46,351 nucleotides of DNA from Lenisia limosa (taxonomy: Eukaryota; Protista; Breviatea). Positions within the stretch are counted from its first letter, which is position 1, and the number at the start of each line of letters is the position of its first letter. The translations under genes and the position numbers were made by a program. The stretch spans positions 1 to 46,351 of the forward strand of contig LPNZ01010410.1 of NCBI GenBank assembly GCA_001655205.1. Reading direction: 5' to 3'. Of this stretch, positions 2,146 through 43,057 are shown one piece after another. The notes below the pieces were generated by a model. It did not search any database. It was given only the letters and a program-made list of their open reading frames with translations, and was not told where the DNA came from.

Positions 2146-4960
2146 CTAATCTAGATCACACAAACTTTCCCGTGTTCTTTTCATGATTGGCATTGCCTCT
2201 TCATCATCAGAAAGGTCGATGACAATTGAGGATGACCTTATTGAAGGATCACCAGGCTATAGAATGAAATATGAAACAGTTTCCTACATCTTGAGAAGAC
2301 TCTTGTGACTCAGAAATCAAACACTCATCAGGAGGAAACAATTTAATCTTTTGTTTGTCTGAATAGATGAAAAGGAAAGAAAGAGAAAAAAAAGGTACCA
2401 GAGAGTCGAGGTATCAAATTTTGAACCTGTATTCTCATTCCAATGTTATCAATTGTGTCGTTGACGCTCATTGGCTGGCCTGAATAGAGTTACAGGCTTT
2501 GAATGAAAACTCACCAGAAAAGGGATCCAGATGACTCTGCTGCAATACTCTTGACAGCGTACTACGATCAATCACCTGTTCAAGTTAGTATCAAAACAAT
2601 TTCTACTTATCCCCTGAAACTAAATGAATTTTCGGAAAAACTCACACCTGTCCAGAAGGCAAGATCATGGGATCTGTCATAAGGAAATGTGTTATAGGAT
2701 CAATAAAATCCGGAGAAATTTCAACTTCAGTTGAATGTATTGAGGGTGCAACTTTTGTTTTATCCATCACTTTTGAAAAGTATGTATGGATGAATTTTGG
2801 AGCAGACCTATGAAAGTTAATCGAAACTGAGTCAATTTTCTTCTCAAACCCCACAAACGCGCTCAGTTTTCCAATAATACGTATGTTGGCAATTCCCAAA
2901 GGGATTACCCCTTGACCTAAGGAGTCAATAATAATCACAAATATGACGAAGCTTATACAGTAGCAACCCACCAGCCAAAAGTTGGATGTTTAAACCTGCC
3001 GCCTTGCAGTTTTGCAATCGGCCATTTTGGATGTGGGTGATGGGTGTTCTGAAACGTGATTGTGAGCCCAGTGTAACCCATCAGGGCTGTTTTGGAGCCG
3101 CCTTTATACGTTTCAAATTAGGGGATGATAAATAATTGTGAGCCTTACTCAGAGGGTATGCTTTTTCTGAGTGTGTCTTTGATTTCCTCTGGTGCAAAAG
3201 CATGGGGAGTCATTAAAATGACAGACTAGAAAGTAAGCCAGAATCATTCAAGTAATGAGTGAAAGTTATCAAACAATATCCCTCTAACTCCTTCACTTAG
3301 AGGTGGGAAGTTTGAAGTTGTCCCCAGGTTGAAACATTCGGGAATTGCTAAGCTGGAAATGACCTGCAAAGAAATGTGAATTATTTGATAATAATATTAT
3401 ATCATATAGTATATGAATGCAGGCATAATATTTCATAATTGTATATATTATATGATATTAGAAAATAGAGTTTCAACCATCAGATCTCTATGATCCTAGT
3501 TTCAATAGAGACTTTACTGCACCCGAAAAAAGGTAATATCTGGCCGAAGCCCTTCATACCATCACGCTTATGAAAGATATCGAACATTAATTAACCTAGT
3601 CATTTGCCTTACAACTTTGTGTACACAGCTTTCTGTTTGCCTCCGCAGCATACGAAATATTTCATAGTTTTTCTATAACAGTTGATAAAACTTGTGGGGG
3701 AAATATACTATTACATATTACCGTTTATAGGGATGAACTCGGCTAAAGCCCTCGTTCATCCGGAGGAACACCTGCAACGCAATCAAACGAGTCCACTACT
3801 GACAATTCCCGAGGGCGTTATGAGTGACTGTGCCTGCAGGGATTTTGGTTTGAGTCGGTTTTCCCAGTGATTTTCATCATTTGAGGCCTAGTGGGGAAAA
3901 AACGTCTGCTTACAAATATTAAAAGGGTGAAGGTGGCAGGAGGGGCTGGCTTTTTGTCATCTTTTATAGTGATCCTTAGAAGTACTTACAGTTAAAATTT
4001 AATATTAAATTTTAACTGATAGCAGTATATGAATATGTATACTAGATAATATTAACATGTAGTAGCGTGAACCTCTTCAGATCCAACGTACTGATCATGT
4101 TTAATTTATAGATAATATTTATCACTTAAGGGTGGGTGGTAAACCAGTGTTCAAGAACACCAAAATACTGAGATGCCCACAGGAAGAGGAAGAGAAGTCA
4201 CACTTGGCTCTGGTAGTTTTGGTGCTCTTTTCCATTGAGGTAAGCTTGTCTGAAAGGGGTGACACGTCTATCCTGCAAGATACACTTTCGCTTTCATTTT
4301 ATTCAACATTTAATCACATGCTGCATATTTTGCCCTCACTTGCGGTGTTCTTTGAAAGCCAATTTTGGTCGTAAGGGCTCCTTTGGGGTTTAAGGTCAGC
4401 GCAATCGCGTATATGTCAATCAAGAACCTACAACCGGTTACTTACCTACATGATATAAACGATATTACCCGTCCCTCTTACGGCCATTGGAAGAAAAAGC
4501 CAAGCGGTGGTCGAACAAAAGGAGCAGCTGCAAACCTAAGGAATAAGGAAAGACGAAAACTTCAACAAACCCTTTCGTTTGACAAGCTTGGTCAGTTCCT
4601 TGTCCAATAACTGTTGTCTCTGGCCCCCTAAGTTCACATCCAAATAGGGATGAATTCAGAACAAACATTATACAAAGACAAATAACATTGTAAGCACTGG
4701 ATAGGGCTTGGGGAATGAAGAACTTGATTTATATACACTAAGATNNNNNNNNNNNNNNNNNNNNNNNNNNNNNNNNNNNNNNNNNNNNNNNNNNNNNNNN
4801 NNNNNNNNNNNNNNNNNNNNNNNNNNNNNNNNNNNNNNNNNGTTTCGAAGGGTTGAGAGACAAGGCAAAGTCAAGGAAAAGGGTGGGGGTGTGACTGGCA
4901 AACTTTGACGATCTGTTGATCTGCTGGATCCTGTTCATCATCACAACACCCCTATACACC
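2146..4960 (-). CDS. U-box domain E3 ligase, UBOX5/RNF37-like (multi-exon; ends approximate)
   Basis: Spliced U-box EISPDFIDPITHFLMTDPMILPSGQ|VIDRSTLSRVLQQSHLDPFS|GQPMSVNDTIDNIGMRIQVQNL. The upstream GQGVIPLGIANIRIIG resembles the UBOX5 N-terminal domain as I recall it. Upstream exons to ~4960 are inferred from GT-AG boundaries. A further 3' exon at ~1870-1950 is possible. Confidence 0.7.
3531..3643 (-). ncRNA. Family A dispersed structured element, long copy 1 (candidate ncRNA or SINE-like repeat), in predicted intron of U-box gene
   Basis: Colinear with 42161-42281. Shares exact blocks CAGAAAGCTGTGT, AGTTGTAAGGCAAATGA, TAAGCGTGATGGT and CCAGATA. Contains a GGC-TTCG-GCC hairpin and is followed by a T-run. 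Confidence 0.6.
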
Positions 4961-5224
4961 TCCTAGTTGCCTCCTCTGGTGTCCCCCCCCCCCCCNNNNN
5001 NNNNNNNNNNNNNNNNNNNNNNNNNNNNNNNNNNNNNNNNNNNNNNNNNNNNNNNNNNNNNNNNNNNNNNNNNNNNNNNNNNNNNNNNNNNNNNNNNNNN
5101 NNNNNNNNNTTCAACTAGTCCTCTGAGATTGCCCTCTCTCCCAAGATCAAGAGACCAAGAGTTCAAGGGCCCGGAACTAAAATAATTCTAAAACAGTCAT
5201 TCGTCTGGAGTCACTCCATTCACT

Positions 5225-6975
5225 ATGTTTTTGGTAAGTTTTGGGATTTTGGGGTTTTATGTTTCTGGCTTTATGGGTTTGCATTAACATCCATTTCCGG
5301 AACACATTTACCTTCGCCATTGCAGGAGCAAACCATTGACAAGATCGAGGCTCTTATGCTGAGGGGAGGTGAGCCTCTTGATGACGAAAGGGAGGAGACC
5401 CTGCCCGAACCCCCTGTGTTTTCGGTAAGCGGTTGGTTTGTGTCAAAGGTAGACTTGAGATTTCCTTTCGTATTTCTGTCATATTAAAACAGGTGTTTTT
5501 TTTTTTTTTTTTTTCACAAAGATAAACGTACAAAATAATGCCTTGTTAACTATGTTTTTTGGTAACTCATCTCATAATCAGTCCGTTCCCTCTGTCCACA
5601 GTGAACTTGTGTTCCTGATTGGACGGCCTGCCATGGAGCTCATTGATGGACCCGAGGAGCCAGGTGTGATCACTTTGCCTTCCGGTGTTAGGTAAGCAGG
5701 ATCTTTTAAGTACTCTATTTAATTCTACCACTTTTAAGACAATCATTCTCAAAATGCTTAATCACAGATTGGCTAGAAATGGTTCAAATGATTTGCCTTG
5801 TTGATATATCGATACCAAAGAATACCTTCTTGGGAGATTTGATAGAATAGATATGATGCAGTTCCTCACCAGGAGTGGAAAGAAGAGAGAGCTTTCTTTT
5901 TTAAGTCAAAGAATGCCCTTGTTGTTTCTTTGAAGGTTGGCTCCTCTTGACATTATCATTACTGAGTCCTTGCACAGATAGTCATATATACTTCTCATTT
6001 CTACATATTTTGTCAACAATTTAGGAAATTAGCAAAAGCAGATGTTCTGAGCTTGTGAGAGTTGTTCTTGACACAATCAAACCCAAAAAGTATGTTTGAT
6101 GTTTTGCACTGGGTGCTTCCCTTTGGTCCGAAATAAGCCATGGAAAAAAACTATTCAATATCTCTTATAAGCGTGATGATGTATACGGCTTCGGCCAGAT
6201 AAAACCTTGTTTTTTATTTCTCGTTGCAATATATTTTTCCAGAATTTATCGAGAAGCTCTTTTTTTTTGGGGGGGGGGGNNNNNNNNNNNNNNNNNNNNN
6301 NNNNNNNNNNNNNNNNNNNNNNNNNNNNNNNNNNNNNNNNNNNNNNNNNNNNNNNNNNNNGTGATGTCCATTTCACATTACCATACTTCATTGTATATTA
6401 TTGCATTGTTTCAACTTTTGTGTGAGGTTACCTCTTGATTCCCTTCAAAAACTATGTGAATCAAAGTACCAATGTCAGGAAGACAGCGTTACCGATCACA
6501 CTGCCTTACAATGTAGTGTGAAGGCCTTTGTGGCGCAGGAGAGTCTTGTATTCCCTCCCATTTCGGATCCAAGCCCGTCGCCATACTCAGTAGGGACCGA
6601 AGGTCCTGTGGCTGGGTACGAACCACTTCCTGCATTGTCGACTTTCGGCGGACCCCTTGCAGCCCTCTTGTCCAAAGTGCGTCTAACAGTGATAAGAGTT
6701 TTGTCATCTGCATTTTACTGCTTCAGTGCCAAAAAGAAGGAATCCCACTTCAGGCGTTTGTAAGCGTTTTCCCAAGCACCCACCCCACAAAGTCCCACCT
6801 TTTGCGTCTGCTTCAAGCCGTGGAAAAGGAAAAATTAGAAGCAGTTCGCAAAGAACAGGTTTGTGGAAAGTGGAATCAAAATTTATTTAAAAAGCATACA
6901 TTGATCATTCAGATCTTGACATGGCTTCGGGAAGAAGACGTTCGTACAACTGACACAACTCATCTTTTCTCATAA
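5225..6975 (+). CDS. Proteasome assembly chaperone PSMG1/PAC1-like protein (multi-exon)
   Basis: Exons MFL|EQTIDKIEALML..., ELVFLIGRPAMELI and GGPLAALLSK|CQKEGIPLQAFV. The last resembles the PAC1 LPAAVLSYCQVWKIP motif as recalled. Stop TAA at 6973-6975. Confidence 0.5.
6153..6208 (+). ncRNA. Family A element, 3'-half copy 2, in intron of PSMG1-like gene
   Basis: ATTCAATATCTCTTATAAGCGTGATGATGTATACGGCTTCGGCCAGATAAAACC is followed by TTGTTTTTTATTTCTC, a flank shared with copy 4. It lies in the long intron starting GTATGT at ~6091. Confidence 0.55.
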
Positions 6976-7089
6976 TCCTATTAACAATGTACACGACACT
7001 CAGACAAGTATTCCAGAATGAGAGATTAAAAAAAAATATCCATTGTATAACGTGGCGAGCAAATAATGTACAGTAAAATAACATTGGAA

Positions 7090-9130
7090 TCAGAAGAAAA
7101 GAAATAGTGAAATAGTTTACAAAAACCCTTCTTGAACAGTTGGGGAAGCTTTGAAGTCTAAAAGCAAGATGAGAAGGGGAACCGATGACAGGAAGCCTAC
7201 CAGGCCTTGATCGAGCTTTTGTCAATTGAACCGATGATAATCGTGGCGAAAGTGAAGCTCTAAAGCCATCACACTCAGTTATTGGAATGTAACACTCAGA
7301 ATGAGAATGACAACATACCTTGGAGAGGATGATAAACGAGGGGAGTGGAGAGGGTTTCGGTTGAACATGTTTTGAACCGGTCTGAAATATGAATATATTA
7401 TCAAAAACAACATTCCACCTCGCAGCTGGCACCCCACCTCAAAAATGGAGACACAGGGCGACGAGTTTGAACCATTGGGGGACCAAGATCGAAGGAAGAC
7501 ATTCTGGTCATCGATGGGACACTATGTGCGGATCTGGAAAAGTAAAAAGATGAGAATGTACCAATTTGAACCAGCCAAAAAAAAATCTTATTTATTCTCT
7601 ACAAAAAAGGAACAGGTAGAATGAAGAATAAACATTAGCTCAAGGGGAGGGGGGTGATAAGAGTTATTTTAGTCAATAGATATTATGATAGTATACATCT
7701 ATTTATGCAAAATGAAGGCCTACCCCAGGAGAAGAGGGGAAGTGATTCGGATATTGTCCAAATTAGCGGAAAGTTCAGGTGACATAGACCACCTCATTCT
7801 AAACCTGTGAGCATATGGACATCCCTTTTCTGCTAAAAGCATGGAACAAACTTGTTGAGACTTCTTGCAGCTCTCTCTTCGTCTTCCTCTTCGGTTAACT
7901 TATCAGTCTTAGGAAGTATGCTGGAGAATGGGCTTCCGACAGGAGCACTGCTGGGTCCAGGCATTTCAGACTCAGCCGCAGTAATAAGTGCCTAGAAAAT
8001 GAGATCCGGACTTATCAAACACAAAACATAACATCCTCTTACTTGGAACATGAGTGTGGGTGTTGAAGGGGACATTTGGATAGTTTCTGTCTTTTGCCGA
8101 GAAGCTAAAGAATAAATATTCACAAAATTATGTTTTTGGAAAATCTTCACATACATTTAGCAGCAGCCGTACTCTTGTCTTCTGTTTTCTTGACTTTTGG
8201 CACGGGTTTAGCCCTTGTTTTTGCCTTCTTCTTGCTCCAAACGTCTTCATCTTCAAGTTCACCCATAAACATTTCCTCCTCCTGTTCTTCTTCGTAATCC
8301 TCCTTGTGATGGTGGGATGAAGACCGTCTCCGCGACCGTGATTGTGGAGCCTCCTACAAGGTTAGCCGTAGTATATATGCTATACGTCTAATTATATTAT
8401 ATTCAAGATGAAAAATAACGCCAGTCTACCCGACTTCAGTACAAGGTTGGTAACATTAAAACCGTAAGCCCATCCCACATATTCAATAGTCGTTTCTGGG
8501 TAGGACTTGCTAACTGATTCTGTAGTCAGGTCAAACTTCAAACTAGCTTCATGTTGCTGCTTGTTGTAGAGGTTTTGGAGCTGACTCTGAAAAGAAGACA
8601 CCTGAAAGATTAGACACCTCAATTGAAGGAATACAAAATTAAAGTCTCAAGCAATTATTCAGCAGCAAAACCCAGCTAGCCTCGGTTGGAGAGACATCAA
8701 ACGATAACGAAGGAACTGCAGCAGCACCTCTGCTGCGGAAGAGCTCCTTGTGGAACTCGTTTACCCGATTCCCACCAACAGTCTGGGGAGAGTAAAGAAG
8801 GTTGTAATTTTGTCTCAGATGGGGCCAGATTCATGCTTAAAGTACTCAGGAAAATTCATCGAAAGAGGAAAGTCGAGAAGGGGTGCAAGAAGAGCACAAG
8901 ACATTCCCATAAAGTGAATATCACTTTTCAAAACCCCGCCAATTAGTACTTACCGGATATGCTACAACAGCATTTGCACTGCTAAATGATTCACCAGTAC
9001 TGAGGAGAGGAGCTGGCTGAAATTGTTCATTGGGAGGATAGGTTGGCAATGAAGACGCAAATTGGTTCAAGAAGTCAGGGGATTCGCGTCGATAGCGACT
9101 CTGTCTCGGAGGAATATGGCTACTGCTCAT
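7090..9130 (-). CDS. Hypothetical low-complexity protein (S/P-rich, acidic and basic tracts; multi-exon; 3' end uncertain)
   Basis: ATG 9130 MSSSHIPPRQSRY.... Open GT-AG-bounded exons include SRSRRRSSSHHHKEDYEEEQEEEMFMGELEDEDVWSKKKAK and ALITAAESEMPGPSS. No domain recognised. Confidence 0.5.
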
Positions 9131-9570
9131 TCTTCGTCAAAAACAGGCGATATTACCCAGCTATATGTAATAAACTATCTTTACATTGAAATAAATGTGA
9201 AATTTGGGTTATGAGGCTTTGTCAACCTCAAGCTGAATAAAATGAAAAACTCAAACCTAGAAAACCTGTCACTATCTAATACTAAACATAACGATATATG
9301 TATCGTGGGTAAAATTGGTGAAAATACAACAAATATTAAAAAATTTGAGCGCGGGCAAAATTTACGATATTAGCATTACGATTCCACCAGTTGCCTCCCT
9401 TTAGTTTCCTTTCCTGATCTTAAATCTTAATACTTTGATTGCAACTTGTTTGAAATCTTCATGAAATCTTGAAAACACATGAATTCACAAAAAAATCTGC
9501 ATAACCAGACCATAAAATAAAGAAACATCAGAGAGGTGATACTGGAACAATAGAAAGAAGGGGTAGTGAT

Positions 9571-11834
9571 TTAGATAGGAACGGGGTTGATTTCTCCAAG
9601 ATAAATTCGACCATCAGAGGAGCCTGAAGCAACAATTGGTTGATTAGGATGGAAGTCCACACCGTTGACACTTCCCTTATGACTAGAAGGTTAAATATCA
9701 ATCTCGAGCGGTAACCAAATTCCTTTCCTTCAAAAAGATCCTGAAACCACAAACCCAGGAAGCTTGAACATGAGACGAGAATTTCTGGCATTCCACACCA
9801 AAACGTTGCGGTCAGCTGAACCGGAGGCAATCTAGAGGAGAGGTGATAAGTGAAACATTTTTGTGAGAGAAAAAAAAAAACTCGGTAACAACATCGCAAC
9901 TCACTTGATTTCCGTCCCAACTCCAGGCTGAGCGGAGGAGATTCTTTTCAAAATCGTGCTGAAAAAAGTCACATTTCATTTCAACTATCAAATACAAAAG
10001 ATGGAGTGCCCACCTTGTGTCCCATCAGGGTGTGTGTAAGACGGTTACTGTCAGCGTGGGAGTTGATGTTCCAAATCTTGACTGGAAAAGGTAAGTTATT
10101 GGAGGGGGGGGGGGGGTTNNNNNNNNNNNNNNNNNNNNNNNNNNNNNNNNNNNNNNNNNNNNNNNNNNNNNNNNNNNNNNNNNNNNNNNNNNNNNNNNCT
10201 CATATTTTAAAATGAAAGGAATATCGGTCTGACAACAAATTAAAACTTCGAAAAGGCATAAACTTGGAAACAAAAACAACACTATATAATGGTTGGATAA
10301 CAAAGTGGAAAAGACAAATTATAAGAACTGTACGTATTGAAAGTTTTTTTTCAGCAGGAAAGTCTCTATTGAAACAAAAAAAAAAGAAGCCCAGATCTGT
10401 AATAAACAAACAAAAGCCAAGCCAGCTTACTTGACTGATCCATGCTGTTAGAGAGGAGACGTGACCCATCAGGGGAGACAGCAAGATGGGTGATAGTATC
10501 TGTATGTCCAGGCAATTTCCTCATAATCTTCTCTGGTCGACGGAGGTCGAAAGTCTAATACATAAGAAAACATTCCCATCTTACAACAGACAAAAAAACC
10601 CAAGCCCTCCAACCAAAACCACGTTTGAGACACCAGCAACATGCACTTCCTGGCTATCATCGGACATTGCAACGGCACAAAGCTGCGGAGGTGAGAATAA
10701 GAGGAACTTTAAAAAAAAAAACAATAAGATTAAAACACACGACAGTTTGAAAAAAAAACAAAAAAAAACAGTCTAGCAGTGCATCACATGGGAAGGGAGG
10801 AAATTATGGGATAAAATATTAGCGTACAGTTATCAAAGTAACCAAAAAGATTGAGCGTTGATAGATAGTGCGGGTAAATCGGAACATTATTTGATAAAAC
10901 GCCGTTTGCGATAATTCAATCCCTCCTCAAACAGGTCCTGCAGTGTTGATGGTGATTTCTGAATATTTGGTGGACATATCCCAAATCTAAACAGTCAAAC
11001 GGTACCCAAAAATGTTTCATGAGAATAAAGATGCAAACTTTGCAAGACTTGTCGTCTGAAACGGTGGCACAGAGGTGGCGACCACGACGGCTTGTGGAAC
11101 TGATGTTGTTAGAACGTGTGGGTGGAAAATGAAGGAAAATGTTTCAAAATACCAGCTTACACAGCATTAACGTAAGAGGTGTGCTCACGAAGACCACGCA
11201 TTCTTTCAAAGGTGCGAGCGTCAGTGATGATGGCAGTCTTATCAGCAGATGCAGAAACAAGCATTCTGAAAACAAAATAAAAAAACACCTCCTTGTGGAA
11301 TGTGGTTTGATCTACTTGTGATATGTAATATTGTTTTACAAATTTCCATATGAAACAGAGAAGAACACCATCCTCTTACGAATCGTCGTAACTCCAGGCA
11401 AGATCGAGAACGGCGTTCTTGTGAACTGGAAGAAAGTAAATGCATGGCAAAAAAAATTATAAAACTAACTTTTCAAGTTTGCATAGTTTTCACAGTCTCC
11501 AAAGGTCTTCCAAAGAAGGACACTCATGTCTCGAGAAGCTGAAGCCAAGGAAGCTCCATCGTTACTGAATTTCACTGAATGGACGATGTCCCTAAATATT
11601 AGTTATTCAATAAAACCTTGATTAAAACCAAACTGGTGCCCTGAAAGAAGCATAGTAGGGGCCTGGAGATCTGAGATTCTGTCGGGAGCCTACAATATGT
11701 CAGAGTCACTTTCTGGTTGTAAAATAATGTCATACATTGATCAGAGCCTTCTTAGAAGTAGAATCTGATACAACAATGGCTCCCATTCGAGCTTTTTTAG
11801 CAGCTGGCTGGTAGTTTGTCGTTGCAAGCTCCAT
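9571..11834 (-). CDS. SNRNP40: U5 snRNP 40 kDa WD40 protein
   Basis: Spliced motifs DLQAPTMLLSGHQ, VHKNAVLDL, LPGHTDTITHLAVSPDGSRLLSNSMDQS, HDFEKNLLRSAWSWDGNQIASGSADRNVLVW and LPGHKGSVNGVDFHPNQPIVASGSSDGRIYLGEI are diagnostic of SNRNP40/WDR57. Confidence 0.93.
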
Positions 11835-12203
11835 TTTCGATAGCTTTAATGGGCTATTGTTGCAAAAAGGAAGAAAAAAAAAAAAAAGTTCACTCTTAAA
11901 ATTGATTAATTTTTGATTACTTATGATTTCCAACTTAGTAAATTAGAACCTTCCTTATTTAGAAGCTTTTGTCTTTAAATCTGAGAAGAGGTCACTAAGT
12001 TTTAAGTTTTTTTAAAGGCAATGAATATCTAAGAGGCTACACATACATTTCTCATTCACCCAATTTTCACGTATTTCATCTTTCTCTCACACCTGCTCTA
12101 AGTACCCTTCTCCAGTTCCATTTGAGATTATTACATTCAATTCTGTAACTAGTCTACTTTTGGAAGCACTGAATCCCTTAAAGCTGGTCTTTGACATTTC
12201 ACA

Positions 12204-14825: not shown

Positions 14826-15159
14826 GAGCCCCGCTCTTCTGATTTCAAGTACTGATGTCTATTTATTACCTGTATTTTTTTATTATTATTAGTTTTCTAT
14901 TTTGTTTCCTATTTTGATTGATTTCATTGTATAGTATTATGGGAGTGGCGTCATTACCTAAGAATTGATAAATTGACGATTTACTGTGGTGATAAAACTG
15001 CCTTCATAATCGGTAATGTGAGCACTTAATCAATAGAAATCTGTCAGAAATACATGAGTGAAACATAAATATACAACAGACATAAGACCATAAGCAAAAA
15101 CGAACATGAAGCAAATAAAAGAATTAAGAAATCATAATAAAACAAAGATCAGCACCGAC

Positions 15160-25752: not shown

Positions 25753-26197
25753 GGGAGGGCTTGGGGAGCGGAATGGAATCCTCCTTTTATGGTCGGCTGG
25801 AGCTAATTTTTCAAGGTCCAACAGCAATAACAATGAAGTTACTTCAAGTAATAAGTCGGTTAAAAGACAACGCGCAAGGCCGCCTTCTAACCATCAACCT
25901 CTTCTCTCCCTTTCGTCATCACTCGGTCTTCATTTCATCATACTATCCAAAAAAAAGAAAATGAGAACTTCCTTTTTGCTTCCTTTGTTCAAAAACACGA
26001 AACGAAAAGAAAAAAATTCACACCATTTATTTATATAGCCGACCTTCCGAACACTATCCCTACTCACGCTTAATATCTGAATATCTTCTTGAATAACTTT
26101 ATATCGCCTAATACAACTCAAGTATTCTCGATTCCCTTGAGGTACAGTTTATCCGTTTATCCGTTTATCGACATGCCTTTTGTTGAGATAAAAAAAG

Positions 26198-26280
26198 AGG
26201 TCATATCATCTGGCCTAAGCACACCATCACGCTAATAGGAGATATTGGTTATTGGATTAAATAAAATACCCAATCTCGAA
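26198..26280 (-). ncRNA. Family A element, diverged copy 3
   Basis: GATTGGGT...CCAATATCTCCTATTAGCGTGATGGTGTGCTTAGGCCAGATG...CCT followed by TTTTTTT. It lies between the secreted-protein gene and the MLO-like ATG, in the same orientation as both. Confidence 0.5.
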
Positions 26281-26619
26281 CTCATAGGATGTAATTCGGA
26301 CAACTTGGGGCAGATTTGGGGACAATATGAAAACTAATTCAGCCCAAATTCAATAACATTATGTAATTTAGCGAGAACAATGCGCCCCCCCCCTGAGTCA
26401 TGTTCCTGATCCATTTTTTCAAACAAGCCTTAGTGTCTTAGCCTCTAAAGTTTGTGTTTGTTTCAGCTACTGAACGGATCCATTGTGGGTGTTCTTGAAC
26501 CTGTGGTGATCATAAAAATAGGACATCTGCAATTAATTTTGAAATTAATTTTGGAATCTCAAGTGGAAATCTTTTGAAGCGAGAATGCAGGTAGTAATTT
26601 TTGAAGAGTCCTAGTACAA

Positions 26620-28717: not shown

Positions 28718-28788
28718 TGCTCTGATCGGCGTGGGATGCTGTGTTTCAGAGCCAAACCCAAAAAATATCCAAATTAAGGCGTTTAGAG

Positions 28789-28818
28789 GAGGAGAGGGGA
28801 GGGGAGGGGAGGGGGGAG
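28789..28818 (+). repeat. (GGGGA)n purine tract upstream of the secreted gene ATG, in the divergent intergenic region
   Basis: ggagaggggaggggaggggagggggggag read directly. Confidence 0.8.
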
Positions 28819-30979: not shown

Positions 30980-31189
30980 ATTGTTAAGCGGGTAAAGACC
31001 ACAATAGGAAACAATGCATTTTATGTATTACATGTATTTGTGAATTTTGAATAACAAATGGCCACACTACAAAGGAAATCGAAAATTATAAGTTATATTG
31101 TAAAAAGGAGTTAGGAAACAAAAATCAGAAACGACACTGTAGACTATTTTTTAGGTTTTTTTTTTTTAATTTGAGGGTCGTTGGAAATT

Positions 31190-34100
31190 TCAGTGCTTCT
31201 TGTTGAGATGGGGGAACTCCTAAAAATGTCAGTTTAACAGGAAAGATAATTGACTCAAGTCCCTTTAAACAGAGATGTACCCACCTTGTCGGTCATGGCT
31301 GGCTGCTTGGGAAGGCTGCGGCCCTTCTTGTCGGACTTGGGGAAGTTGCTCATGTCTGGGAATTGGGCCATGATCTCAAGAAGGTCGGGACGGATGACAA
31401 GGGGGTTCTTGGACTGAAGCGTAAGGGGGAGGGGGGGATTCGGACACATCGGAAGTCATCATATACGAGTAGACAAACCTTTCTGTAGGTGAGGAAAGCC
31501 TTGAACTTCTCAATACCGTAGAGGCTTCCTTCGCGGTAGTCACTATGCCGTAAGGGGAGAAGGGAGAAGTAAAAAAAAAAAATAGCGTCAGAATGTGACT
31601 GCAGAAAAAAAGTTTGAAATAGTATTTTACTCTTTTGCCTAAATATGAGTGTGGTTTCGGCCATCACAATCCTGGGGTCTGGGCTAAGTAGCAAACCTGA
31701 CGGAAACTTCCATGAAGTCATCGAAAATCTCAGTACGGAAGTTCTTCTCAAGACCATAGGACATGAAGCGAAGAAGACACTCAACACCATAACTGTGGAG
31801 TCAGAAGCAAATGAACGGTCGAGAGAAGGCTGAAGCAAAATAACCTCAGATCAAAGATCGTCATCATTCGGCCAAAGCCGTTTGTGGTAGTAACGAAATA
31901 ATAAGAATCTTCACAGGCTGTCACAGTCACACCGTGTCCTCATACCGATACTCCTTGGCAGCGTCTTCCATAGCGAAGGTCTTGAACTCGTTGTACATTG
32001 TGCGGTTGTAGTTGTCACGGAGGAAGTGAGACCAGAAACGGAACAGAGTGTTCATTTCAGCGCTGCCAGCTCCAACACGCTTGCGCTCTAAACAAGTTAA
32101 GGAGATGAAGAAGAAAACAAGAAAAAGACCCGCCTCCCTCTTGACAGCTCAAATAAAGAAGCCAATCCTACCCTTGAGGCACTTGGCGCGGAATCTGTCG
32201 TAGAGCTGTTGCTGGAAGCCATGGTCACGCAGGAGAGCGTGGGAGGGATGTTCATGTCCAGGTGAGCCGGCAGCGGGGGATGAACCAAGTTTTGGTGACT
32301 CTGTTAGGCTCTACAATGGTGAGTGGCATGCACTGAAACGCAAGGGGTGAATAATCATGAGGCTTACGTGGGGAGCATGATGCGAATGAGGGTCCGGAGA
32401 CTTTCCAAGGAACCATCCAACGTGACTGTGGCCTGAACGCGTCAATCCAACCCATCTACAGATTTCTATAGAGCATAACAAACCTTCAAGAGAGCCGGCA
32501 GGAAGAGAGGAGCGATCACCACTACGTGCCGGGTACACTCGCTGCAGAGTTAGTTGGTGATTTCCAACAAGGGGCTAGGGGAACGCCACTTACAGGCTTG
32601 CTGATGTTAATGGCCTTAGAGCGCTTCTCCTTTTTCTTCTCCTCCTTCTTTTCAGGCTTCTCTCCCCTCATGGCAGAGACTTCGGCAGCAGTTCGGGTCT
32701 AAAAAATTCAAAAACGAAAAAAAACATCATTTTGAGTATTTCACTAATAAAAACAAACATTTTGGATTGGACCACTCTTACCGTAACAGAAGGCTGGTTC
32801 TGGAGACGATGGTCACTGTTGCGTCCGCGAGCCACATCACGTTCATAAGTGTAAAGTCCGTCGTTGATGGCGTCCATCATGTCATCGTTGACAGCCTTGC
32901 GGAAGACGGCCTTGCCTAATGCAGTCATTGGGATTGACCCTTTAGTTCGTAGTTAATGAAAGATAACCTTAGATCAAAGGTCGTCATCATTCGGCCAAAG
33001 CCGTTTGTGGTAGTAACGAAATAATAAGAAGCTTCAGAGGCTTTAAACATTTCACATAACAAAGACAAGCCCACATACCAGTACGGTCATGCTTGGGCTG
33101 AGTGAAAATCATAAGCTTGCGAACTTCATGGTCGGAGAAGTCCTCTTCGCTGTCCTCATCGTCCTACACTGTCATATCGACCAGATAATATTCTGAAGCA
33201 GAAAATCAAATAACCTCAGATTAAAGATCGTCATCATTCGGCCGAAGCCGTTTGTGGTAGTAACGAAATAATAAGAATCTTCACAGGCTCACAAATGATA
33301 CGCTTATAATAATGTATCTATTAATCGAAACGATTCAAAATAAATATATCATATAACATCACAAACCTTGAGAGTCATTTTGTCAAGCTTCTCCTGGGAA
33401 CGATCGAGCAGATCCTCATCAAAGGCGAACATGTCATCATCCTCATCGTCATGGGCAGCAGCAGCGGCAGGGGCGGGGACAGCCTTACGGGGAGGCTAAA
33501 TCCGTAAGGCATTCAAAAGAATATCAAAACAGTCAGCATTAAGAGCGCTCAGATGGGTTTGCTCACTAAACAGACCTTGGTCTTGGTAGCGGGCTGATGA
33601 TGAGACAAGGGGGAGGACTTGGAAAGGGAGGCCTTCTGCGGGCTTGAAGCACGACTGTTGGAACGGGGGCGGTTCTTGCGAGCCACCTTCCATTCGCCAC
33701 CGTCATCATCCTCAGCTAAGGGTTGTGAGTAACTGCTATCCAGAGGGAAACAAGAACGATTAACTGCCGCACCCCCTTACTGTTGTCGGGCGTGTCGATG
33801 GGCTTGGACTCGATCTTGACTTCCTCGGTCTTGGCATCTTCCTTGGGTTCAGCCTTAGGCTTTTCCGAAGTCTACGTCACTAATGAGACAACACCCATGT
33901 GATATGTGTATGCTAACGACCATGATTGCAGCTTACCTCCTCCTTCTTGGGAACAACTGAGACGGAGGGCTCGATAGTTGAGGGAGAGGCATTGCTGAGT
34001 ACCCATCTTAAGTGTCAAAGTCATCCAAACACAAACGAAGTTGCCAAGTTTGAAGGGTTAACCGCTCACCTTTCCCAGTCAGTCTTCAGCCTGAGGGCCT

Positions 34101-36438
34101 TCTGGTTTGGACAAACATCAACACAGTTAACACGGATGGCAGCCTCGTGAACTTGCTCATGAGTGAAGAGCTGGAAGGTCAGATGGGCTTGTTGAGAACA
34201 GCACAAACCTTAAGTCTTGGGAACACGCTGATGTCCTTGATGAGGATCCAGCCGGCAGCATCCATGAGGCGGCGGAAGTACATGTCGTGCCAGAGGTTGT
34301 CTTGGGAGAAGTAGAACGACCTTGAATGTGAACACAAGCTTCATCAGAAGATTGTTAATTCTACCCCCTCGCAGCCTACACTTGAGCAATGATGAACTGA
34401 CGGATCTCGCTTTTGGTAGTCAGACGAATGTTGACGACCTACATCGTTAAGCACCGAGACTTGTTCATTGTAAAACAAAAGAATAAATCTGATGTTATAC
34501 TGATATGTCATGACAAAAAAAAAAAAAAAAAAAANNNNNNNNNNNNNNNNNNNNNNNNNNNNNNNNNNNNNNNNNNNNNNNNNNNNNACATAAACAAAGA
34601 CACCCATGCTCACCTCTCCGAACTCATTGCGTGCCGGGACTTCGTACACCTGTCCAGCCTCCTCAGCCTGTGCATCGCTGTTGCTTCGGGCACCGCCGCG
34701 ACCGCCTCTACCGCGTCCGCGACCTACACCGTCAGAGGGGGGGGGGGATGATAACTAATACTAGATAACAAAACACTGTCTCACTTGTATAAAAATAATT
34801 CACCAAATCATGTTTCATTGACACAAGGAAACAGAATTTTTCTCTTAGGGGGCCATTGATTTGTATTTCCGGATAAAAATAGGTTAAAATATTTGATTTA
34901 CTATTTAAATTAGTGGCGGTGTTGGCGGCGATGTTTTCCTTGGTATTCATGATGGTTAAGAAGGAAAAAAGGTGGACCTGGGAGATGATAATACAAAAAC
35001 CGTTTATTGGAACAACTTTATTTGAATGAAATTTTATCTACCTCCTTGAGTAAAAAATTATTTATCAATCGCCCACTTAAATTTATTACCTAAACTTAAA
35101 TATAAAACTAAAATCAATCGCACCCTTAGAAGACCAAAGATCATGCTACAACATACCTCCACGTCCACGACCTCCGCGGCCGGCTGATCTTTCAGACTAA
35201 AAATGTCACAATACTATCATTCAAACGTAAGCCCAAAGTCCAGTGGAGCAACACAAGAAGCATCCGAACCCACGTCATCCTTCTTGTCAACGGGAACCAG
35301 GTTGAAGCCCACTTGTACGGGTTGCTCCTCCTTGATTGTCAAAGAAAGAACAATCATTATTGCATAGCTTCACATGAGACCCACCTTAGCGGTCTTCTTT
35401 CCCTTGGTCTTGCCGACCTTCGGCTTCTTGCTGTCCTTGGCCTCCTAAACAATGAGTCGACAACCCTCAAGAAGACCCAGAGAATGCCTTCGCACCTTTG
35501 GGGGATTGGCGAGAGAGGGCCAGTCGCCGGAAGCCTTGGCAGGGGCCGTGGCACCAGACTGGGGGGTAAATTCAATCCATGTGGCCATGTGGATGTTGGT
35601 CATTGCTTTGTGTTCAACAGGACTATTGGCCTCTACTCACCTTCGAAGTGTCCCATTTGCGGTTGGAGGGGGCCTCAGTGGGTTCTGACGCTGTCACCTC
35701 CTCCTTCTTTGCCTCGGCCTTAGGGGGAGACTTGGCTGCGGGAGCTGCAAGCGGTGAAATATGTCTTCCATTATTGTTTGCAGCTTGGAACAAATGTATA
35801 TAAAAGGAAGGAGCGATGGAAGAGGGGGAAAAGAGGAAAAGATTAGCCCATACCTTCGCCAGCTGATGACTCTGATCTTCCTCCACGTCCACCACGTCCT
35901 CTTCCTCGTCCACCACGTCCTCGAGCGGCTTCTTTCTTCTGATTGCGAACTTCGCTCTGTTTTTCAGTGTTTGAAATGGTCTTCTGACGCTGCTTTTCTT
36001 TTTCCTCGTGCTCCTTTTGTAAATTGGTGAGCTTCACCTCCTAAGAAGTGGGGTTAGCGTCATAGAAAGAGGAATACTTAAGGAATAAAGCCTGATAGGA
36101 GGAAGATATCCCCAAAACATAATATTACTCCTAAACTTATCAGCAAAAATGCCATTTAACATTAATAAAGAGATTGGCAACATGCACTCCTCGATTAAGA
36201 AAGCACACCTGCTTAATACTTATTTATTTGTACTAATAAACCTGAAAAGCAGGCAATACTACACAAACACCGTCAAGGAAGAAGAACATCAAAACGAATA
36301 TGGAAGAAAGACGCAATTACTGCCCAGTAATACCTCATCTTTAGAGTGCTTGGGCTCATAGACACTGGAAGGACGCTTCTTTCCCCATACAGAAACGGGG
36401 ACAGATTGATCTGATGGCTGAGCGCCAGCTTCACTCAT
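31190..36438 (-). CDS. LARP1: La-related protein 1 (La motif, RGG tracts, DM15 repeats)
   Basis: La motif [26 protein letters not shown]. Also [14 protein letters not shown], and DM15 segments [53 protein letters not shown] and [16 protein letters not shown] tracts at ~34690 and ~35870. Confidence 0.92.
31842..31919 (-). ncRNA. Box C/D snoRNA, copy a (LARP1 intron)
   Basis: Terminal stem AGCCT/AGGTT, box C GTGAAGA, C' ATGATGA, box D CTGA. Guide TTTCGTTACTACC is complementary to SSU rRNA GGUAGUGACGAAA. Sense orientation within the intron separating YR|YG codons. Confidence 0.8.
32965..33042 (-). ncRNA. Box C/D snoRNA, copy b with degenerate boxes (LARP1 intron)
   Basis: Same guide and stem as copy a, but box C reads CTGAAGC and box D reads CTAA. 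Confidence 0.65.
33212..33289 (-). ncRNA. Box C/D snoRNA, copy c (LARP1 intron)
   Basis: Near-identical to copy a, with boxes intact and an internal hairpin CGGC-TTCG-GCCG. Confidence 0.8.
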
Positions 36439-36868
36439 TGTGCTCTAATTACTTATAAGACAACTGTCTTCCTCCACTTAAGGGCTAGTTTCGCAAAAAA
36501 GCGTTCTGGAACAAATTATAAAAAATATTATACTTTACAAGCTACGGTTTTTAATTGTTAATAACGGATAATAATAGTATTCAACTGTAAATGTAAAGAG
36601 GACATTTTTTCCCAAGATTTTTTGAAATAGCAGCGGCTCGACAGAGCCATTGCACCTTTCCCCAAAATTGTCCTTGACGGTACCAGGTCTTTCCATCCAT
36701 CTCCCAGCTTTCTGTCTCCAAATTACATTAATTTATAAAACAGCAGCAAATCTTATTAATTTGTGTGGTGCATATTTTGTCATTGAAAGGCGGTCATTCT
36801 TCTTGATTGTGATTATTTGTTGCTGCACAAGATGTGAATTTTTCAGAGAACTTTTCCTATAAAACAAA

Positions 36869-39800
36869 ATGGCAGTGAAATCTCTGGGAGAGGCTGCATC
36901 AGTGTCCTCATTGCTACCAGGTATGGCGAATTTGTTGTCAATAAATTTGTAACGTTTCAGGCTATTATTTCTCGTTCCCTTATTTTTCATCCCTTCGAAG
37001 GTGGGCTGAAAGTATATTTAAACATTTAAAGTGGAGTAGATTTGTAACCTTCTCCAAGATCCATTTTGTAAAAACAGTTGCCTAATATTGGGTTTTTTGG
37101 TTAATGGGAAATGTAAGGTTACGTACATTACTACATGTTTCGCAAATAACCAACATCAGTTTGGCAATTGAAACCGGAATACAGAACGCCAGCCCCGCAA
37201 CATCCAATCTTCTGTTCCCAAATGCCAACTCTACCTCCCTTCCAGTGCTCCCCAGATCCTATCTCACCCCGACTCCCACTCCAAAACCAACCATCGCTGA
37301 GCATCCAAAAGTGTCCCCCATTCCCCCCCTCGTAAATGACCAGTCCACCCAGGGTAATGATTTATCTGAAGATTCGGTTCTTTTGACACCAATGAGACCC
37401 TTTGGTGAGTTGGGATGGTGCCAAATTTCCAACCTTGACCTAACAATTTCAGGGAACCGTCCCACTGGAATGTCCCCACGAGTCTCTCGAGTGTCCCCAC
37501 CAACTCATTCCTCTGACCATGCCAAACAGGCTTCCCCAGGTAAGTGTCAGGTTCCTAGTGCCTTTTCTTGATTTGCGTGAATTATAATGTCCTTTTGTGA
37601 TAGCACCTAATCTGCAGGGTTTGACAGACGCTTATCATCTCGGGACCTCAGTACGCCTTCAAGATTGTGGGAGGGGTGACGAGACGATATTGTATTACTA
37701 ATATCTTTTTTTTACTATCTAGAAGAAAAACCATTCAACCTCCACCAAAATTCCACGAGGAACCGACAGGTGGGTTCTTACAAATACATAAAGAGTTTTT
37801 TTTGAGCAAGCGTTTACTTTTTAGAGCTACATGCAACTATCTCTTCATTATCCTGGAAATTGGACCTTGAAAAAGAGTGAGTGAAGCAGTTTTTTATTTC
37901 TTCAATGTTGACTTTTATTGATAGTCAATTTACAAGAGCAAATAATTGACGATTCAGAACTGTGGAAAGATTACAACAATCCCTTGCTGAGCAAGAACAC
38001 CAGAACTGCAAAAGTGGGAACTTAGCACAACTTCAACGTCAAAATCCAATCATAATTTTGTTATGTTTGTTAACAACCCAGTGTCAGCTGACTTGAAGTC
38101 TTCACACATTGAAAGGGAAGTTATCTCCGCTGAACGTAAAGGTTATTGGAATGAATGAAAACTCAATTTTTCTCAACACAATGACACTTTTAACTATCCA
38201 GGACACGCAGCCCTCCGTTCGGAGTTTGCTGAGCTCCAACTTCAACTCCAAAAATCAGTGCGTTCACTTGAGGCACATCATGACTGACGATTTCTAGGAG
38301 CTTTCTAGGGCCCAGCTTCAAGATAAACTCACAGAGCAAGCCGGACAGCTGACGTCAGCAAGGAGGTCTCTTCAGGATGCCTCGGAGCGGTTCACTGGTT
38401 GGCTGCCATCGTTAAATGGACTCACTGCTTTGAGCGTTTTACTATTTCCCATTGGGTACTGCACCTGCTCATTTGATAGGATTGGCAGCTGGTATGGCAG
38501 AGAGCAGGGAACTTCGCTGCACCACTGAAGAAAAATGTAAGTACCAGACATGTCGCTTCATTCATCTCTCACAACACAATATAGTGCGACAATGTCTTGA
38601 GGAACTGGAAAACACCAAGTTTAGGCTACACGAAACCAAAAACAGGAACCAGTACGCCGATGACACTTCGAGAAATGACATTCAACATGAAATCCGGAGC
38701 AGCATCACGGAGGAACTGACTGCTCAACATCAGAAACAGCAGGATGAACTGCGAACTGTTCTCAACACCCAGCTGACAGCACTTCAGGAAAAGTGCGAGA
38801 AAATCTCCAGTGACCTGGCTCATGTGGCCATGGAGAAAACGGAAACTGATCGGGCGTTAAAAACGGCAAGAGAGGAAATCACTCTCAAGGACAATGAAGT
38901 CACAAGGCTTCAGGAAACTGTTAAGTCGCTGAGTGACCGTCAAGTGCTGAAGTCTGACGAGAACAAGCGGCTTGAAGAGCAGGCCCAAGCATCCTCAGAT
39001 CTGGCCCAGCAGCTGTCAAGAGAACACAGTGTTGAAGTTGCTGGCTTGAAGAAGCAACTAAGCACTCATGAGAAAACTGTCGAGCTGCTTCGTACTGAAT
39101 TGGAGGGTCGAATCCAGGCTGACAGTCACACTAAAGAACAGCATAAGGCTGAGGCCAGTGCCGCCAACGATCGGGCAAGTCAAGCTGAAAGACGCTGTGC
39201 TGATTTGGAAAAGCGCTTTGAGTTGGAGGACTCGTTTACTCAATTGCCTGGTATGCCTGGTTTCATTCTGTTTTCTATTTATTTTATTTTTTCCCCTGTA
39301 AATGTATTACAAGATAAGGTTACTTTTTACTATTCTCAAGAAGGTTCGCTGTACATATCACTCCTTCAGACCCTTCGTTAAACGAAACGACCCTGAAGTT
39401 ACAGCTTGAAGAAACCAGGCAACAATTGACCTCTGCACACGCCCAGCTCACTGCCTCCCAAGAAAGGGCAGCCATATTGGATAGCGACTTCGAGACTCAG
39501 CAGTCTCTCCTCGCCAAGTCTCAAAGTTGGAATGACTTCTTCGACTTTTTCTTGAAACTGGTGTTGACTTTTCCCAGGCCGGCTTGAAGCAGCCCAGCAT
39601 ACCATTGCCACTGTCAAGCAGGAGCTGGGCACTTCTGCCGCCGAAGTCGAACAGCTGAAGGTCCTGCTCGAGTCCGAACAGTTTGCAGGGCTTTGGCAAC
39701 GGCAGCGTTGATAATGCTGACTTTTCAGAAAAGACAATGAGCAAGGGTTGGAAAGACTCAAGTCTGAGCTGCAGCAATTTAGGCAAGAATCTTATAAAAG

Positions 39801-40771
39801 TATGGCCTTGCAGAAAATAGAACGATATAATAAGATAAACATGTATCGTCGTCTTACCATTGTACAAAATTATATGGTAGTTTCATAATATCTGAAATTC
39901 TATCCGTTCACAGTGTTTAGTGAGCCGGGACCAGGACTCTGTTGAAGGTAAGGTTGCTAATGACAATGCCATTAAAGACGCCCTTCTGACAGAGTCTATT
40001 ACAAGTGGGTGGATCGACTGCTTTTTTATATTTCGTATTCAATTTTCCTCACCACCCAGCATCTATTCTCTCAATGAAGGCTGCTATTCTGTCCATCCAC
40101 CAGTCCATCAGACCTGCCTCCAACATGGAAACTATCATAAACATCCCTGAACGTAGGTTTGGTTTGTTTTTATTGTAATAGTTCGTTGCCTTCTCGACTG
40201 TATGACATACTACATGTATTTGGCCACTACTCTATGTGATAATTGATTCAAAACAAGTTTACTTCTCTATAGTTCCAGATGGGGCCACACCAACTGATGT
40301 TCTGGCGTTAGTGAGATCGCTTTCTGTTGTGAGCTGAGGAATATCTTTTATTCGAATCTCTGGCTCATTTAACTTTCAAAATGCCGTCTTTTGGTGCATT
40401 ATGGGAAATTATTGCGCAGGGCCTCTCGGAATCAATAAAAGAGCTCCAAACGGCGACAAGTGATTTCTCGACCCTGTATACTGACATGATGGGGAGTCTC
40501 AAGAGGTCTTCCACGGTCAGTGATTACTCTGTTTTATTATCTAATTGAAGTAGGCAGAGCAATCTACAAACAACCCCCTCCTTGATTACCTCAATTAGTG
40601 TTTCTTATTTATTTAATAGTTGTGTACATTATTAGTATTATGTTATTTATATGCATATATAGTAGCTATAATATGATATACTATAATAGATATATAGTAT
40701 ATGATATATATTACATGTATAATGTAATGGTTCAGAGGAAATCTCCGATTATGCCTCAGAAGAAAAGTTGA
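36869..40771 (+). CDS. Long coiled-coil hypothetical protein with Pro-rich N-terminal region (multi-exon)
   Basis: The 309-aa ORF 38452-39381 is mostly a heptad-rich E/K/Q/L exon. Further coiled-coil exons follow (TLKLQLEETRQQLTSAHAQL, GLERLKSELQQFRQE). Predicted stop TGA at 40769-40771. Confidence 0.65.
40610..40725. repeat. TA-rich low-complexity intronic tract (TATAGTATAT/ATATGATAT-like); similar tracts at ~3385-3465, 18075-18135, 19170-19215, 41705-41865, 42045-42140 and 46258-46300
   Basis: Read directly: near-absence of C/G runs and recurrent ATATGATATA and TAGTATAT words. Confidence 0.7.
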
Positions 40772-40830
40772 ATGTTAAATTGAATTGAGACATCAATAAT
40801 AATTACATCTAATATATAAAGCTGTTTAGG

Positions 40831-43057
40831 CTACTTAATCCAAATTTGGTGAACAGTAGGAGAGTCGACAGACATATCGTCACATTCCCACCTAAATTGT
40901 GTGACATGCAATACATGGAAAGATTTGCCCACCTGTTTGCAAGAAGATTCCAGTGACGAAGTCCCGCTAAGTAGAACGAATGGTTGTAGAGAGGTAGTGA
41001 ACTCACTTGGGGGTCACAATTACAATTTATCAGAGATACTATCAACTACAACCAATACTCCAGCATACAATGGACAGAATCTGCACCTTTCGGAATAACT
41101 GCGTTATGATCGGCCTGAAGGGTGGAGGTGGTTTTCTGATGTGTTATCCTCAAACGAAGCTGCCGCTTTTCGGATCCAAAAGGAAGCAAAACACAAATTT
41201 GAAATACCAACCAAATCACTCAGAATCGCAGCTGAAGTAGAACCTCCTGTTGGGTAAATGATAGGGCGATTAAATGATTGAATTTTGGAAAAGGCTTTGG
41301 AGTTTTATTTTCCAAAATTTGGTAACACTGTCCAATGCCCAGATTTGCCTCGTCATACCAGGATTTCCCATCATGTGACCTTTGAAGAGGCTTCCCGTTA
41401 CGCTAATAGTATCAGAATGGTTCTTGTAACAGATGAAAAAGGACACCAATGCAAACTTGAAATGTAAGACAGTTGAGGATTTAGCGCAGTACCACAGGGA
41501 AGAACTGAACTAAACGATAGTAAACGACAACGTGACATCGGATCGAAAAAGAACAGTACAACATAATACAATTATGGGAATTTATTCCAAAAAAAAGTAC
41601 CTCAACAAGGTTCATGGTTTCTGTAGACATATGACCCCAATCATCTTGGCCAAATGAGTCATCTCCTGAGGGTGGGTGGTAAAAGCATACTACACAATAG
41701 AGTGGATATAATTAGATACATGTATACATACATATCATTTGATATGATATGTATAATTCAGTTAACTGCTTATACTTAAACATATATGTATGTATATTAT
41801 ATCATATGATATATATATATATACTACATACTATATATATATTACTATTATGTACATTAGACAAAATGCAAAACATGATAAGGTGAAACTTGTTGATGAA
41901 ATAAAAAATAGAACATTGGGAGGTTCACACACCTAAGGATCTTGGCTGGTAGTTTGGCCCGACCCCAGTGGCTAGAACAGAAGTTGTACGTGAGGAAACC
42001 GTCTAAGGAAGGTGAGATATAACCTACATCCGCAGTCTTTTATTATGTCATAATATATTCACGACCTTAGTAATTATATCATAGTAATATAGCTATATCA
42101 TATATATATATAGTATATGCATATGATAGGTAATATTATAGCAATGAGAAATAAAAAACAAGGCTGTATCTGGTCGTAGCCGTCTACACCATCACGCTTA
42201 GAGATATTGAATTATAGTACAATATTAATTCACCCAATCATTTGCCTTACAACTATGTGCACACAGCTTTCTGCGTGCCTCATCAATAGCTATATCGATA
42301 TATTATTTGTAAGTCTTATTTTAGTAAAAGAGTCAAAAAATAGTGACGTATATATATGATAGTGTTGACATACATTTGCATAGGATAACGCCAGCATCCA
42401 AGGACCATCAGGCTTGTCAAAGTCGCAATAGACCTTCAAAATGCTCCCTGATTGCAGCAGTCTTCGTTGACCTGACACTGGGCATCCTAAGGAGTGACCA
42501 TGAACCCTAAAACTGAAAGAGTCATGAACATAGTGCAACCTTCTTCCTGAGACTCCAAACACGAAGCAAACACCATCTTGCTACAAATGCTCGCATCCAA
42601 CTGCATTTTGTGAGAAGAGAAGTCTTTTGTTCTTCAAAAACACATTCTTTTTGGATTTATCTCTCCCCATATGAACTCACTTCGGATAATTTAGTGTCAA
42701 GGCGCGACTCCTACAATCATTAATTGTGAGCATCCCTTTTGTGATTACCTCAAAAGAAATATATATTTTAAGTTTGAAAAAATAGAGTCACACTTACCGC
42801 TTCATCAACGTATTGCTTGTTGGCAATGTGCATGGGTAGTGAAGGAGCTCCAACCTCAATCCCAGTCGAGCTTAACCTGAGTAGTCTGTTATATGCCAAT
42901 TATCGCATAAATTGCTGTGAAAGTAATAATACTCAAATAGGATGGGAAACAATCATTATCCAAAGAAAAGGTAGAAAGGGCATGCAACCTACTTAAAGCA
43001 AGCACAGCTGGAGATGATAAGAACAAGGAGAAAGCAGGTGATGTGATTCATGGCCAT
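40831..43057 (-). CDS. Secreted protein with fibrinogen-like (YCD-x-GGGW-type) C-terminal domain
   Basis: Signal MAMNHITCFLLVLIISSCA; PMHIANKQYVDEA; ASCLE...ILKVYCDFDKPDGPWMLALSYAN; DDWGHMS; WYCAKSSTVLHFK; LYNHSFYLAGLRHWNLLANR|WECDD...TVHQIWIK-TAG. Confidence 0.7.
42161..42281 (-). ncRNA. Family A element, long copy 4, in intron of fibrinogen-like gene
   Basis: GAGGCACGCAGAAAGCTGTGTGCAC...AGTTGTAAGGCAAATGATTGGGT...AATATCTCTAAGCGTGATGGTGTAGACGGCTACGACCAGATACAGCCT followed by TGTTTTTT. It is sense within the intron following exon ...LSYAN. Confidence 0.6.

Follow-up and report, generated by a model that had tools for sequence, protein, structure and literature searches.

The four related elements found in a 46,351-nucleotide (nt) stretch of DNA from Lenisia limosa (contig LPNZ01010410.1, positions 1 to 46,351; hereafter the window) belong to a lineage-specific short interspersed repeat family with a built-in 5' splice site, which is used by at least one host gene. 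We regard them as probable copies of an abundant, lineage-specific, non-autonomous and mainly intronic repeat, either introner-like or similar to a short interspersed nuclear element (SINE), which most likely spread by retroposition as SINEs do. In the model that we propose, a copy inserted in sense orientation within an intron, or just upstream of one, would be spliced out together with the host intron and could hence be tolerated and accumulate; once inserted, copies would drift freely, and some may now supply the donor of the host gene. An earlier note on this stretch had offered two readings, namely a new small ribonucleoprotein RNA or a SINE-like element with 5'-truncated copies; the second came much closer, and the link of the family to splice donors was missing from that account.

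Four elements had been reported at 3531-3643 (minus strand), 6153-6208 (plus), 26198-26280 (minus) and 42161-42281 (minus), and we found related elements at all four places and on these strands, with a similarity far beyond chance. Pairwise BLAST searches between the copies gave E values of 1e-5 to 1e-23, a MAFFT alignment of the four showed an invariant core around ATATCT...AGCGTGATG...GAT...CC followed by the T-run, and the exact 9-mer AGCGTGATG has four sites in the 46-kb window, which are the four copies only. The exact blocks common to copies 1 and 4 (CAGAAAGCTGTGT, AGTTGTAAGGCAAATGA and TAAGCGTGATGGT) and the ATATCT...AGAT inverted repeat in each of the four copies are present as described. 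The spacers with insertions and deletions between these blocks are real, but consist mostly of deletions specific to copy 1; likewise, CCT followed by at least five T occurs in all four copies, but does not mark the end of the element, as homology extends beyond the T-run in copies 2, 3 and 4 (ATTTCTC...). Copy 1 (3441-3655, minus) has a full-length 5' part that starts with GTATGCTGCGGAGGCA at 3655; its family homology ends at the T-run near 3526, beyond which follow a non-family 3' segment, including a separately repeated stretch at 3482-3521, and then a TA-rich tail. Copy 2 (6090-6235, plus) starts at an RNA-verified donor, GTATGT, and is diverged in the middle while it keeps the 3' module, the T-run and ATTTCTCGTTGCAATATAT. 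Copy 3 (26185-26310, minus), which had been described as having merely a shortened hairpin, is instead a diverged full-length copy that occupies about these positions. Copy 4 (42100-42285, minus) is close to the consensus (90% identical), with an internal GTAAGG, the 3' module, the T-run, ATTTCTCATTGCTATAA and a TA-rich tail, and its 5' end reads GCTATTGATGAGGCAC, with GC where the family has GT. None of the four copies touches an assembly gap.

The anatomy of the family was read from alignments of 15-17 copies, among which those labelled L034 to L045 come from a public assembly of the same genome. The family consensus spans about 162 nt, followed by a TA-rich tail of variable length (12-41 nt), and consists, in order, of GTATGCTGGGGAGGCAC at the start, GCAGAAAGCTGTGTGCACAGAGTT, GTAAGGCAAATGATTGGGTGAATTAAT, the 3' module ATATCTCTTATAAGCGTGATGGTGTGGACGGCTTCGGCCAGATACAACC, the T-run, ATTTCTCATTGCTATAT and the TA-rich tail, so that the 3' end of the family reads ...CTCATTGCTATAT(TA)n. 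It starts with the donor-like GTATGC, contains a second donor-like site, GTAAGG, and has a branch-site-like CTCAT after a T-rich run, within TTTCTCATTGCTATAT. Conservation is about even along the whole element, and the identity of clear copies to the consensus is 81-94%. The T-run has at least five T in 13 of 17 copies and at most four in the remaining 4, and the approximately 22 nt beyond it (ATTTCTCATTGCTATAT) show a column identity of 80-100% in 13 of 15 aligned copies; since homology thus continues past the T-run, the latter is internal and not a terminator that defines the end of the element. Several copies are shortened at the 5' end, starting at consensus positions of about 28 (L044a and L045b), 62 (L045a) and 100 (L041a and L043b), and two others (L038b and L040) have internal deletions, which together make the 3' module the part most often kept. 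This module (ATATCT...AGCGTGATGG...CCAGATA) would accordingly be the portion that survives in 5'-truncated copies, although at L041 2194-2340 the 5' module is tandemly duplicated and the 3' module is wholly missing. A coding-exon reading of the 3' module was also considered and dropped: most copies keep one open frame, but the substitutions show no bias towards third positions of codons, and a stop interrupts copy 3. Homology of the whole introns of copies 1 and 4 was dropped as well: BLAST aligned 282 columns, but a global alignment resolved the flanks into AT-rich noise, leaving a core of about 120-130 nt. TA-rich and partly palindromic stretches of the ATATGATATA type lie at 41794-41875, 40636-40721, 42085-42138 and 3391-3458, and because such stretches recur in several introns they produce spurious BLAST similarity between introns.

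The family has hundreds to thousands of copies in the Lenisia limosa genome. The summed depth of DNA contigs reaches 6818 at 3448-3628 and 4522 at 6163-6343, as compared with about 36 elsewhere, which places the elements at 125-190 times the baseline, and the 391 DNA contigs mapped show many loose ends and joints where the elements border on other sequence. The genes called for this eukaryotic contig in public records are open reading frames (ORFs) of prokaryotic style, many of which read TGA as W; as a consequence, protein databases hold many spurious ORFs, and the repeat can be recovered by protein search. The 3' module is open in one of its sense frames (...ISYKRDGVDGFGQIQPCFLFLIAI...), and a four-sequence peptide profile of this frame, run against 1.8 billion representative proteins, recovered 54 spurious ORFs at E<=1e-3, many of which have the 5' module in frame too. 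All eight ORFs that were looked up (P0005, P0008, P0010, P0014, P0017, P0029, P0032 and P0034) lie on other contigs of the same assembly; with those of the window included, ten ORFs were traced, all to this assembly, and copies were seen on nine different contigs. Altogether, about 22 copies or fragments were counted in about 156 kb, comprising the contigs found through ORFs and a 26-kb walk along the window's own contig; that walk through called ORFs, many of them with in-frame stops, yielded one new copy. An unbiased contiguous stretch held 5 copies in 73 kb, from which a few thousand copies can be roughly extrapolated for the assembly of about 70 Mb. A metagenome pattern scan for the 3' module gave 33 matches, about the number expected by chance and none with the T-run or flanking similarity, and with chance matches only the family appears to be lineage-specific. 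A paralogue search for other contigs, made with two protein queries, returned the genome's own proteins only, namely the query itself. Within the window only four copies are visible, as might be expected if a few introns had been duplicated or converted among genes in the ordinary way and no dispersed mobile family existed; we give this explanation practically no credence, as the host genes are unrelated, homology stops sharply inside the introns, the copies are spread over nine contigs and the DNA depth exceeds 100 times the baseline.

An interesting feature of the family is its relation to splice donors. In the host gene of copy 2, joints in RNA contigs delimit seven GT..AG introns, with donors GTAAGT, GTAAGC, GTATGT and GTTTGT, and the host intron of copy 2 (6090-6516, plus; joint 6089->6517, GT..AG) starts with GTATGT, matching the 5' end of the family. 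This intron contains an assembly gap at 6280-6360, which the RNA contig bridges. In six further copies (L039a, L039b, L038a, L041_2212, L045_1190 and copy 1) a GTAT start directly follows the upstream flank. The start of the element is consistent with an exon-intron boundary in L039a, L039b, L041_2212, L040 and c5; copies 1 and 4 start inside the intron, and in L042, perhaps also in c5, the exon boundary lies at the internal GTAAGG instead. We had considered the internal GTAAGG as the donor of copies 2 and c5, but with more copies the case became ambiguous, with L042 in its favour and copy 2 fitting the terminal GTATG better. In 10 of 13 copies the upstream flank has an open frame of 40 codons or more up to the boundary, as compared with 43% of random positions (p=0.015), which gives only modest support because so many random positions pass as well. 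The CTTAC or TTTAC branch-like motifs of the verified introns fall in the stretch before the AG, and the element's own CTCAT resembles a CTCAT near one verified acceptor. An RNA-verified intron of 89 nt at 5934-6022 has ...ACTTCTCATTTCTACATAT about 20 nt before its AG, closely resembling the 3' end of the family (ATTTCTCATTGCTATAT); the profile search does not call this intron a family copy.

Each of the four window copies is located in or next to a different gene, and these genes are unrelated. Three of them had been placed in introns in the sense orientation of the host, which RNA contigs establish for copy 2, whereas for copies 1 and 4 the placement is predicted from donor and acceptor motifs and flanking ORFs. 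The predicted donors of their introns, which measure about 355 and 370 nt, are 66 and 92 nt 5' of copies 1 and 4, respectively, both of which are in sense, and the orientation of these three copies may reflect a general sense bias of the family. The predicted host intron of copy 1 (3366-3721, minus) has its donor GTAATATG at 3721 and its acceptor at about 3366 or 3353; none of the three frames stays open from this donor to the element, and polyA RNA contigs cover 2166-3447 and are absent from 3448 to 4171. The predicted host intron of copy 4 (42003-42373, minus) has the donor GTATGT after an exon ending in ...TATGCAAAT and CCTTCCTTAG as its acceptor, and a fibrinogen-like VYCDFDKPDGPW motif is encoded in the host exon of this copy. 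The exon upstream of this copy (42374-42562, minus) carries the fibrinogen-C-like motif ILKVYCDFDKPDGPWMLALSYAN; a Pfam search with this 63-residue piece gave no match. Copy 3 was placed by eye and apparently lies outside any intron, after one minus-strand gene has ended and before the ATG of the following one.

As to how the family spread, the variable length of the flanking repeats, the variable TA-rich tail and the variable 5' truncation point to retroposition. Flanking direct repeats, as candidate target-site duplications, were seen in three of nine copies with a recognisable 5' start, in AT-rich flanks. Those of copy 1 comprise 14 nt with 13 of 14 matching (upstream arm 3656-3669, downstream arm 3427-3440, minus), those of copy 4 are an exact 11-nt GATATAGCTAT (upstream arm 42286-42296, downstream arm 42089-42099, minus), and in L039a the repeat is 8 nt long and takes in the G of the donor. 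In mismatched control pairs, none of 72 shared a word of 10 nt. Judging from its flanking repeat, L039a may have been inserted immediately 5' of a donor that was already there, shifting the exon end by 9 nt and keeping the reading phase. The SINE-like reading of the earlier note thus agrees with our data in the variable 5' truncation, the TA-rich tail and the direct repeats of some copies, and fails in the polymerase III (Pol III) A and B boxes, neither of which is present in the consensus within two mismatches, and in the small-RNA-derived head.

The same intron-associated repeat could also have spread as DNA, through a cut-and-paste introner of the miniature inverted-repeat transposable element (MITE) type without an RNA copy. 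Such an origin is in keeping with the weak inverted similarity of the termini that we saw by eye (5' GTATGC... / ...GCTATATAT 3'), and with the internal-deletion copies L038b and L040, which keep both ends as derivatives of DNA transposons often do. However, a transposase produces duplications of fixed length, whereas those found here measure 8, 11 and 14 nt, the terminal similarity amounts to only about 5 bp, the 3' tail is TA-rich and variable in length, and many copies are shortened at the 5' end only and at varied points, and we therefore judge spread as DNA to be unlikely, though worth bearing in mind. A more specific proposal, to which we assign a rather low probability, is that the family is a retroposed intron, that is, an excised-intron RNA copied back into the genome by reverse transcriptase. 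An excised-intron template would account both for a start of the element exactly at a GU donor and for its branch-site-like CTCAT after a T-rich run, and copying back would leave target duplications of variable length, a TA-rich tail and 5' truncations; introns might in this way seed or extend other introns via an RNA intermediate.

Several observations weigh against the picture of an abundant, retroposed, donor-carrying repeat. The flanking repeats are missing in six other copies, the flanks are AT-rich, the 3' end of copy 1 is set by the T-run, and the search for target duplications in 5'-truncated copies returned low-complexity matches only. Neither a partner reverse transcriptase nor a Pol III promoter or master copy was identified, and the internal run of six T would make it harder for Pol III to transcribe as far as the tail. 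With respect to copy number, part of the depth peak at copy 1 is due to the second repeat at 3482-3521 and the peak near copy 2 possibly derives in part from low-complexity runs; most of the extra copies were found through sense-frame ORFs, making the sample a biased one, and a strand test by the longest flanking ORF gave no strand information. With respect to splicing, copy 2 is the only one with an RNA-verified donor and is itself a diverged copy with weak 5' homology, while the acceptor is not carried by the element, which ends 10-60 nt before the AG; the intervening stretch is non-homologous between copies, so that any creation of introns by the family is only putative. Finally, the sole RNA library was polyA-selected, and a small stable RNA would not be visible in it.

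Alternatively, a functional small RNA, similar to a small nucleolar RNA (snoRNA) or bearing a kink-turn, transcribed by Pol III or processed from introns and multiplied into genes and pseudogenes, might be encoded by the 3' module or by the entire element of about 120 nt. Several features favour this possibility: GUGAUGG...CCAGAU could form tandem G.A pairs, the consensus has a cUUCGg hairpin, most copies have the run of at least five T, and the window copies are in sense to their hosts. A new small RNA of the box C/D-like type, transcribed by Pol III and ending at the T-run, is however not supported by the tests, which gave no Rfam match, no unusual fold stability, no covariation and no end of conservation at the T-run; the copy number in the hundreds to thousands and the even conservation also resemble those of a repeat that drifts freely. 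A cmscan of the whole window against Rfam 15 at the gathering threshold gave nothing, and at E<=10 copies 1 and 4 and the near-consensus L043a gave nothing credible and no snoRNA family. Single-sequence folds of seven element versions scored z values of -1.1 to +1.1 against dinucleotide shuffles, and their minimum-energy structures differ from copy to copy, with no common fold among the seven. For covariation, the TATCT/AGATA and GGC-UUCG-GCC helices were examined in 17 aligned copies of the 3' module, giving 133 pair cells; the score was 0.072 as compared with 0.068 in shuffles, a change on both sides was seen in 1 of the 133 cells, no more than in shuffles, and several substitutions break pairs. 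The 87% of cells that do pair are accounted for by the presence of these inverted repeats in the consensus, and the RNAalifold energy for the 17 copies was -1.54 kcal/mol.

The C-box-like GUGAUGG lacks both a CUGA partner and an adjoining closing helix. It is the sole motif of this kind, some 40 nt away from the T-run, and has CCAGAUA rather than CUGA after it, and a loop of 10-13 nt separates the kink-turn from the proposed neighbouring helix. No C box was found near the 5' end of the family, where UGAUGA occurs in copy 4 only, nor any D box (CUGA) or terminal stem joining the ends of the element. Conservation does not stop at the T-run, as it should at a Pol III terminator: ATTTCTCATTGCTATAT beyond it is as conserved as the 3' module. 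Depth in the polyA RNA run is zero over copies 1 and 2, which is a weak test, as polyA-selected contigs are uninformative for small RNA. Taken together, a functional small RNA appears very improbable. Resemblances to hammerhead, selenocysteine insertion sequence (SECIS), H/ACA, U6atac and U12 RNAs were also examined and set aside, as the motif order fits none of them, in agreement with Rfam.

Some observations concern the assembly and neighbouring repeats. The window lies within a 256-kb contig of the independent public assembly of the same genome, which spans the three gaps tested (34535, 43900 and 46065) with real letters and colinear flanks. The gap lengths in other sequence differ from the estimates: the gap at 34535 has 40 letters in the public assembly as compared with 53 estimated, that at 46065 has 47 as compared with 118, and for the gap at 4745-4841 a DNA contig gives 61 letters as compared with 97. 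The segment of about 40 nt at 3482-3521 just 3' of copy 1 (hairpin GTCTCTAT...ATAGAGAT) has a very high copy number in DNA contigs, with loose contig ends on both sides, and in some contigs its reverse complement runs directly into the start of the 3' module. A partial copy of 22 nt is present at 10354-10375, and the segment probably belongs to another repeat family. In addition, runs of 9-14 G or C adjoin gaps and several copies, at 6269-6279 and 26385-26393 and in the flanks of L038, L043 and L041.

These results remove one candidate for a new small RNA class and add a donor-side, intron-resident repeat family to the Lenisia limosa genome. If donor-side and acceptor-side families coexist, and if the present family moves via RNA, this genome might become a useful natural system in which to address how mobile elements build, extend or remodel spliceosomal introns.

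Among known systems, box C/D snoRNAs such as U8 and U3 share with the family a GUGAUG(G/A) that resembles a C or C' box as well as an intronic, sense location. Unlike them, the family has no D box, terminal stem, Rfam match or covariation, its boxes are not at the ends, and it consists of hundreds of decaying copies. Fungal introner-like elements (ILEs) comprise whole introns for which an RNA-level origin has been proposed and unusually stable predicted structures were reported. The present family covers only part of an intron, with a fold no better than chance, but like fungal ILEs it occurs in introns of unrelated genes and has no obvious terminal inverted repeats. SINEs are likewise short and present in high copy number, with a conserved 3' end, varied 5' truncations, a simple-sequence tail of variable length and, in some copies, direct repeats of variable length; however, our family has no head similar to tRNA, 5S or 7SL RNA and no A or B box, and it differs from SINEs in its internal T-run, its tail that is TA-rich and not poly(A), and its splice-donor 5' end.

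Introners, which are intron-generating or intron-resident transposable elements (Gozashti et al. 2022, PMC9860276), resemble the family in that many similar sequences lie in sense in the introns of unrelated genes of a protist host, are AT-rich relative to exons, and have a 5' end that is a donor sequence, in the family actually used in at least one case. In contrast to introners, the role of the family in creating introns is only putative, its homology ends 10-60 nt before the acceptor, and of the four window copies two are embedded deep within larger introns, while one seemingly lies outside any. Most described introner families have a DNA-transposon origin (PMC9860276) and flanking repeats of typically 3-9 bp, whereas those of the present family are long and variable, and its variable 5' truncation and TA-rich tail point to an RNA intermediate.

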